This document shows, one piece after another, positions 1 through 62,777 of a stretch of 64,000 nucleotides of DNA. The notes beneath the pieces were generated by a model. The model was given only the letters and a program-made list of their open reading frames with translations, was not told the DNA's origin and ran no database searches. The stretch's first letter is position 1. Every line of letters begins with the position of its first letter. Position numbers and translations under genes: made by a program. This DNA comes from Octopus bimaculoides. Lineage: Eukaryota. The DNA lies in the NCBI RefSeq assembly GCF_001194135.2, contig NC_068981.1, forward strand, positions 71,694,360 through 71,758,359, read 5' to 3'.

Positions 1-346
1 CCTAACAGGGCGAAAACTTCTGGAATTAAGGTCACTAATTAGCATAGCATCATCCAGCGCAACGTAATGAGGTAACGTTACGCACTTGAACAGGTGCACT
101 TTGAGCCCTCCGCTCACTTAATTTTTCTCTCCCATCTCACAAACAAGTAAAATCTACCATAGAGATATACATCATAGAAAGCATAAAACAAATATCAGCA
201 AGACCAGAGTTGGCAGAGACGACTCAATTTTATGCCAGCAATAAAAAAATAACGAACATGGAAACGATTAAAGCTAGATAATGCGTCTACTCACCACAAG
301 TACAAGTTCTGCTATACAGAGCGGTGCTATTTTTAAAAAAAAAATA

Positions 347-386
347 GGACCTCCCCATTTAAATTTAAGACCCTGGGTAAAGGTCC
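347..386 (-). promoter_or_regulatory. Candidate L10ARE: uL1-binding RNA hairpin in RPL10A intron 2
   Basis: GGACCU-UUA-CCCA-(loop)-UGGG-G-AGGUCC, 40 nt, between the productive 5'ss (638) and a distal GTGAGT 5'ss (294-289). GGGAG opposite UACC resembles the L1-stalk rRNA site. Confidence 0.7.
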
Positions 387-638
387 GTAAGGTTTAGAAA
401 AACCCAACTACCTAATAAGTGACTTATAGGAGGCGATATAACGACTTAAAAAAAAAAATTGACATGGTGGTGGACATATGAAGGATTTTGCTAGCCTATA
501 CATTTTATCATACACATCACATATATATAGGCTAGCAATTTTTCTAAGAAATCAAAAAGGATAACTAAACTGTCGTATTGCCTGCCTCCTAGGAGTCTCT
601 TTTATAGGTCGAATAAATAAAAAGATTGCTGTCCGTAC

Positions 639-3675: not shown

Positions 3676-62777
<59,102 letters not shown>

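Follow-up and report, generated by a model that had tools for sequence, protein, structure and literature searches.

A probable uL1-responsive L10ARE splicing element in the RPL10A gene of Octopus bimaculoides, its comparative RNA structure, and a possible likeness to the uL1 binding site on rRNA

The second intron of the Octopus bimaculoides RPL10A gene carries a 40-nt element that, on the evidence of homology, is a true orthologue of L10ARE, and by means of this element ribosomal protein uL1 probably regulates its own gene, RPL10A, through alternative splicing that feeds into nonsense-mediated decay. The element occupies positions 347-386 on the minus strand of the 64,000-nt stretch of DNA analyzed here (the window). 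At the sequence level, it lies between a weak upstream 5' splice site (GTACGG, 638) and a strong downstream one (GTGAGT, 294), and both sites are conserved in three octopods. L10ARE was described as a conserved sequence of 39-40 nt in human, chicken, Xenopus, zebrafish, Drosophila, and C. elegans (Takei et al. 2016, PMC4937301). It binds RPL-1 in vitro and is required in worm and mammalian reporters for the L10a-dependent switch to a downstream unproductive splice site; placed in a heterologous context, it is necessary but does not suffice (PMC4937301). A literature search for the term L10ARE returned only that 2016 study.

Results

The gene in the window is RPL10A, and its second intron is positioned as in all the orthologues that we examined. 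The minus strand of the window holds RPL10A exons 1 and 2 and the initial 638 nt of intron 2. The coding part of exon 1 (ATGAG, 1061-1065, with the ATG at 1065) is directly followed by the donor GTTCGT, and it joins in frame to the 156-nt exon 2 (639-794) to encode MSSKITKD..., identical to XP_014783926.1. Exon 2 ends after the second nucleotide of the Lys54 codon (..SGTVK), and residues 1-54 share 100% identity with RPL10A of O. bimaculoides and O. sinensis. A full-length protein search returned a cluster that includes RPL10A sequences from Argonauta hians, Octopus sinensis/vulgaris, and O. bimaculoides, and over 1300 nt the window shows 100% identity to locus L089 of O. bimaculoides (GCA_001194135.2, CM046601.1). 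This octopod cluster and the match to L089 confirm that an earlier annotation made from the letters of the DNA (the sequence-only reading) was correct in calling the gene cephalopod-like RPL10A. Intron 2 is 1158 nt long, and exon 3 starts outside the window, 520 nt past position 1 (L089:3086), behind a TTTCAG acceptor. The codon split, between nucleotides 2 and 3, is common to all orthologues examined. It is also the codon position of the intron defined for L10ARE: Takei et al. (2016, PMC4937301) took introns as orthologous when they split the codon corresponding to C. elegans Arg53 after its second nucleotide.

Some features of the gene and the window lie apart from intron 2. An annotated RPL10A isoform of O. 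vulgaris (P0307, 251 aa) has an N-terminus 34 residues longer, in which the 3' end of intron 1 is read into exon 2; this probably reflects an error of annotation or an alternative first exon, and it has no relation to intron 2. A search for tRNA genes across the window found none. N runs and a long CA/TG-rich low-complexity tract with a GC skew of -0.64 occupy 41900-43850 and give rise to spurious long ORFs on both strands, and more N gaps occur at about 47.5 kb and 56.8-57.4 kb. The gaps and the low-complexity tract thus mark that part of the assembly as draft quality.

The two 5' splice sites of intron 2 differ in strength, and use of the second would introduce a premature stop. The productive upstream site (AAA/GTACGG, 633-638) is a weak match to the consensus and is identical in the three octopods, whereas the candidate unproductive site downstream (GTG/GTGAGT, 289-294) is a strong match and is kept in the same three species (5.0 versus 9.2 in a simple PWM donor score). 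If the 294 donor were used, exon 2 would be extended by 344 nt (295-638), a length that is not a multiple of three, and five in-frame stops would be included. The first of these is a TAA at 602-604, located 34 nt into the extension and 307 nt before the alternative junction. The sequence-only reading had named the productive donor at 638, the GTGAGT donor at 294 with its 344-nt extension, and the in-frame TAA as a premature stop, and each was recovered at the same place. The same TAA is kept in O. sinensis, and Argonauta has a TGA instead, after a 2-nt indel; an extension length not divisible by three and an early in-frame stop are found in 3/3 octopods. When the truncated products predicted for O. 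bimaculoides, O. sinensis, and Argonauta were looked up by exact sequence, no match was returned.

Conservation among octopods follows the pattern that would be expected if the interval from donor to donor were a functional RNA. When intron 2 was aligned among O. bimaculoides, O. sinensis, and Argonauta hians, the 40-nt element proved 100% identical. It is surrounded by a conserved intronic block (about 286-446, minus strand) that stops just past G/GTGAGTA. The three octopods also share about 60 nt that open the intron with the weak donor, and the sequence past the downstream donor is unalignable in Argonauta. By blastn against Argonauta, the element block showed 92% identity over 144 nt and the exon 2 block 85%.

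Two other features of intron 2 resemble small RNA genes at low scores. A 16-bp perfect inverted repeat (UUGCUAGCCUAUAUAUAUG...UGUAUAGGCUAGCAA) at window positions 477-550 matched mir-2567 with E = 0.14, far under threshold; O. sinensis shares this repeat and Argonauta lacks it. Past the alternative donor, positions 144-207 scored 16.8 bits for the C/D-box family snoMe28S-Cm2645, whose gathering score is 48 (E = 4.1), and the match is probably due to chance, since this segment is not conserved in Argonauta. A search of the whole window at the Rfam gathering thresholds found no family, and a permissive Rfam search of positions 1-1300 found sub-threshold chance matches only.

The 40-nt core (GGACCTTTACCCAGGGTCTTAAATTTAAATGGGGAGGTCC, 347-386) stands out by its sequence. 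The sequence-only reading had reported a hairpin there, and it is present as described and is also the RNAfold minimum-energy structure. Its folding energy is ordinary for its composition (z = -1.03; 35/200 shuffles fold equally well), so the hairpin by itself is not beyond chance, whereas its sequence is. The motif GACCNNNACCCAGGGTC-N(6-24)-TGGGNAG occurs once in the 64 kb and 0 times in 100 shuffles. Covariance model R1, built from a seed of 38 non-cephalopod elements from which Limulus was left out, gave a single match on the window, at 348-388 of the minus strand, with 50 bits and an E value of about 1e-10. The same model recovers the same site in O. sinensis and Argonauta and scores the Limulus polyphemus element at 48 bits.

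The element recurs in the orthologous intron across animal phyla. RPL10A exon-2 loci were sampled blind to the element, through short read-through ORFs and 80 metagenomic loci identified by a protein pattern; a protein search with the 54-aa N-terminus yielded only short read-through ORFs from metagenomes, and these served as loci. With the exception of L052, all sampled loci in which an intron follows ..SGTV(K/R) and the sequence extends far enough downstream carry a core of the form (G)GACCY-NNA-CCCAGGGUC-(A-rich, 6-20 nt)-UGGG-N-AG, at 37-300 nt from the donor, and none of the sampled loci with uninterrupted coding at ..SGTV(K/R) carries it. The core is found in this intron in about 25 metagenomic eukaryote lineages as well as in a mammal, a fly, a sea urchin, and Limulus. 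In Nannospalax galili, GGACCCCCACCCUGGGUCUUAAAACAAGAGGGGAGG lies about 150 nt into the orthologous intron and is followed by a GTAAGG donor, and Drosophila miranda, Strongylocentrotus purpuratus, and Limulus polyphemus likewise have the element in the orthologous intron. The match to the published human and worm elements is made through proxies, namely the rodent Nannospalax and another Drosophila species. The homology in orthologous introns and the 50-bit score from a model free of cephalopods identify the hairpin at 347-386, by sequence, as a true L10ARE orthologue, which bears out the candidate identity given in the sequence-only reading. That reading had also proposed a comparison of orthologous introns, in which the 40 nt of the hairpin proved identical in the three octopods and the core was found in other phyla. 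The element is lost in some lineages; Helobdella robusta (L092) and L052 have a short intron of about 100 nt at the canonical position and no L10ARE.

Variation in copy number and intron was also seen. Tandem copies of the element, about 85-150 nt apart in one intron, were found in L003 (3316-3352 and 3404-3440), L037, L038, and L043. In these lineages, a strong donor follows the second copy, and the second copies are more diverged (GGGUAG, AACC/GGUU). RPL10A of the coral Pocillopora meandrina has no intron at the ..SGTVK codon and carries a full L10ARE-like element (L087:1489-1527; 43.7 bits with R1) in a later intron, after ..IKFQMKK, together with its own version (GACC GUUU GGUC) of the hairpin P2 that is described below. 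Its presence in a non-orthologous intron suggests an origin before Bilateria and a change of intron.

The comparison supports a structure in which a stem-loop, P1, is joined by a two-nucleotide NA bulge to a downstream hairpin, P2, and both P1 and P2 are backed by compensatory changes in the aligned sequences. The structure statistics refer to 38 distinct elements in alignment A3, with alignment A5 also used for the 5' strand. This strand (GGACCUUUA, 378-386, minus strand) includes a GGACC that is near-invariant across phyla, and its last A is invariant (A3 and A5). P1 (354-377) pairs CCCA (374-377) with UGGG (354-357) around the loop GGGUCUUAAAUUUAAA; it is paired in 100% of the 38 elements and includes two compensated pairs, seen as CUCA/UGAG in Drosophila and CCCU/AGGG in vertebrates. 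The bulge, GA in octopus (352-353; A3 columns 30-31), has a variable first base and an invariant A.

P2 (323-351, minus strand; GGU-C-CUAUUUUU / AAAAAUAG-C-ACC) begins at the GG after the bulge. The hairpin in the window has a folding energy of -13.0 kcal/mol (z = -4.1), and its stem is conserved and its loop variable in O. sinensis and Argonauta. Equivalents of differing sequence are present in nearly all lineages, with a median z of -2.6 for constrained folds compared with dinucleotide shuffles. The G after the bulge pairs downstream with a mean probability of 0.77 in ensemble folds, versus 0.15 for upstream pairing. The first pair of P2 is G-C in 38/38 elements, the second is G-C in 30 and A-U in 8, and the third takes five pair types; the 3' partners were picked by folding and are therefore biased to pairing, which leaves the diversity of pair types unaffected. 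An earlier test of P2, based on the longest perfect helix by offset, was uninformative because its loose motif let in false elements and G-rich offsets pair anywhere.

The hairpin proposed in the sequence-only reading held up in part. Its inner stem, which is P1, is always paired and compensated, but its 6-bp outer stem is paired in only 63% of the 38 elements, and the covariation check across orthologous introns found compensation in the inner stem and never in the outer one. With its three outer pairs mostly broken and uncompensated, the outer stem was rejected as a feature of the family. It is the minimum-energy pairing in both Octopus species, and it is a possibility specific to certain lineages, namely Octopus, Drosophila, and L003. 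The GACCU of the 5' strand could pair with GGGUC (369-373) or, in octopus, with AGGUCC (347-352). GACCY and the loop RGGUC are pairable in 97.9% of cases, with one compensated case (AACC/GGUU) and a fifth pair that is U-G in 23, C-G in 12, and U-A in 2, and their pairing would form a possible H-type pseudoknot. Since both strands are nearly invariant, covariation says little in favor of this pseudoknot.

Discussion

The RPL10A intron of octopus probably hosts a feedback switch of the kind reported for other animals. By default, the weak 638 donor would be joined to exon 3 to yield a productive mRNA. Excess free uL1 would bind the element, splicing would move to the strong 294 donor, and the resulting 344-nt extension, with a TAA 34 nt in and a frameshift, would cause the transcript to be degraded or to yield only a 65-aa fragment. 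From the behavior of C. elegans, human cells, and zebrafish (PMC4937301, PMC7354994), we infer that in octopus uL1 binds the element, the 294 donor comes into use, and the product decays; zebrafish upf1 mutants accumulate the downstream-donor isoform (PMC7354994).

The strong downstream donor may be masked by local structure until uL1 binding favors P2. A tentative hairpin between CACCGC (321-326) and GUGGUG (292-297) would cover the 294 donor from -3 to +3 and overlaps the 3' strand of P2. Thermodynamic prediction gives the donor an unpaired probability of about 0 in the minimum-energy fold of both Octopus species, and Argonauta has GCGGUG at the donor-covering helix, a change from G-U to G-C. 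Stabilization of P2 by uL1 might in this way free the 294 donor. A second tentative helix is long-range and would join UAGGAGGC (584-591, minus strand), 47 nt past the productive donor, to the complementary GCCUCCUA (427-434). Both arms are kept in Argonauta, where the sequence between them is diverged or deleted, and the helix is part of the minimum-energy fold of 645-280 (z = -3.8). Such pairing could conceivably bring the productive donor near the element.

Donor choice is the output that we favor for octopus, and retention of the intron is an unlikely alternative output of the same element. Under this alternative, the element is a true L10ARE that in octopus mainly blocks the upstream donor, and intron 2 would be retained and the transcript then kept in the nucleus or degraded. 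The productive donor at the same position is usually weak in other lineages too, of the GTAYGN type, and most long-intron lineages have a consensus-like donor 45-100 nt past the last element. GTRAG occurs 40-110 nt after the element in 13/24 lineage groups, compared with an expectation of 12% derived from those introns themselves (binomial p about 1e-6), the chance frequency of GTRAG being about 0.0018 per nt. This strong enrichment of downstream donors past the element in long-intron lineages argues against retention, as does the preservation of GTG/GTGAGT in three octopods exactly where conservation stops. However, six lineages with short introns of 100-250 nt (L036, L039, L042, L046, L049, and L069) have the element and no downstream donor, so the output there may be intron retention, and an isoform retaining intron 3 was also seen in HeLa cells (Takei et al., PMC4937301). 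Because a premature stop lies near the intron start, retention of intron 2 would be equally unproductive.

An origin of the conserved block outside RPL10A regulation is far less probable. The block would then be another intron-hosted element, such as a snoRNA, a miRNA, or an enhancer, and its likeness to L10ARE would be incidental. Introns of ribosomal protein genes often host small RNAs, and the sub-threshold matches to mir-2567 (477-550, E = 0.14) and the C/D-box family (144-207, E = 4.1) lie nearby; yet no Rfam family reaches threshold anywhere in the window, and the 477-550 hairpin is not conserved in Argonauta. The element is moreover tied to RPL10A across phyla, coral included, and its compensatory changes are strand-specific and act at the RNA level. 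The reading of the hairpin and GTGAGT as chance features of an AT-rich intron, to which the unremarkable folding energy (z = -1.03) and the chance occurrence of GTRAG might lend themselves, is refuted by the 100% identity in three octopods, the absence of the motif from all window shuffles, and the score of the independent model (50 bits, E about 1e-10), and its probability is negligible.

The L10ARE structure with P1 and P2 may also bear on how uL1 recognizes it. From the sequence comparison, L10ARE could be a permuted mimic of the uL1 site on rRNA, a reading that we take seriously while leaning slightly against it. The mimic would be longer than 40 nt, with the stem-loop, the NA bulge, and P2 standing for helix 77, the GA bulge, and helix 78, perhaps stabilized by the GGACC/GGGUC pseudoknot. 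Twelve viral-contig loci were tried as the eukaryotic 28S L1-stalk segment and rejected, their flanks being unlike rRNA by eye in 12/12. As these loci are not rRNA-like, the comparison uses the bacterial Rfam consensus and, beside it, a presumed eukaryotic 28S L1-stalk sequence. The Rfam LSU_rRNA_bacteria consensus, checked on the E. coli 23S gene, reads [gGuGG]-GA-[GgC...GcC]-aucguUGAaAUA-[CCaCc], which comprises helix 77, the GA bulge, helix 78, and a 12-nt strand back to helix 77. L1 domain I contacts the bulge together with the duplex of helix 77 and the base of helix 78 (PMC5689012).

L10ARE, written as ...NNA-[CCCA]-loop-[UGGG]-NA-[GG...CC], shares with this site two helices whose G-rich strand runs from one to the other through a 2-nt bulge with A as its last base. 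The first helix closes and the second opens with two G-C pairs (gGuGG-GA-GgC in rRNA, UGGG-NA-GG in L10ARE), and an unpaired A, invariant in L10ARE, lies directly 5' of CC on the opposite strand. The GA bulge of octopus matches the GA between helices 77 and 78 of the Rfam consensus. Set against that consensus, the core features of helix 77, J1-2, and helix 78 are all found in L10ARE: P1 ends in G-C, the A of the bulge is invariant, and P2 starts with G-C. What differs is that the first helix of L10ARE is capped by a conserved loop and that the return strand from helix 78 to helix 77 is broken, the continuous J2-1 strand that links the 3' side of P2 to P1 being absent. Because the chain exits after P2 and the partner strand of P1 enters from the 5' side, the relationship would be a circular permutation, not a collinear copy. 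The resemblance to a circularly permuted L1 stalk that the sequence-only reading had noticed is thus plausible, but the second helix is better taken as the downstream P2 than as the outer stem.

The main value of this analysis lies in the comparative structure and in the rRNA-mimic hypothesis. The octopus copy extends the range of L10ARE to Mollusca, which is an expected addition, and L10ARE belongs to a rare kind of element, regulatory RNAs in introns that retain their sequence from one animal phylum to another. The comparison yields an L10ARE structure with support from compensatory changes, in which the functional unit appears to reach into the downstream hairpin P2. A permuted copy of the uL1 rRNA site is a concrete hypothesis for how uL1 finds its own pre-mRNA, and, if true, such mimicry would explain this recognition across animals. 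The analysis also suggests a way in which a strong downstream donor could stay silent until the protein binds. These structural points are testable with a few mutants in the existing worm and human minigenes.

Compared with the published L10ARE, the octopus element is found in the same gene and at the same intron position, is about 40 nt long, and lies, at the sequence level, between upstream and downstream 5' splice sites with a premature stop between them. It differs in its host, a mollusc outside the published alignment, and in its distance from the upstream donor, which is 248 nt in octopus versus 45 nt in the worm. The published work contained no covariation-backed structure; it described L10ARE as unrelated to the L1 stalk and left the mode of recognition open (Takei et al., PMC4937301), and a model of L10ARE as an rRNA mimic did not turn up in our literature search. 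Unlike the rRNA site and the L1 mRNA sites of archaea and bacteria, L10ARE has splice-site choice as its output, not translational repression. The logic in which excess free ribosomal protein directs its own transcripts to unproductive forms is shared with C. elegans rpl-12 and rpl-3, human RPL3 and RPS13, and yeast RPL30 (PMC4937301). The other ribosomal-protein circuits that act through splicing or through alternative splicing and nonsense-mediated decay use other cis-elements, and among them only L10ARE has been reported to be conserved in sequence from nematodes and insects to vertebrates.
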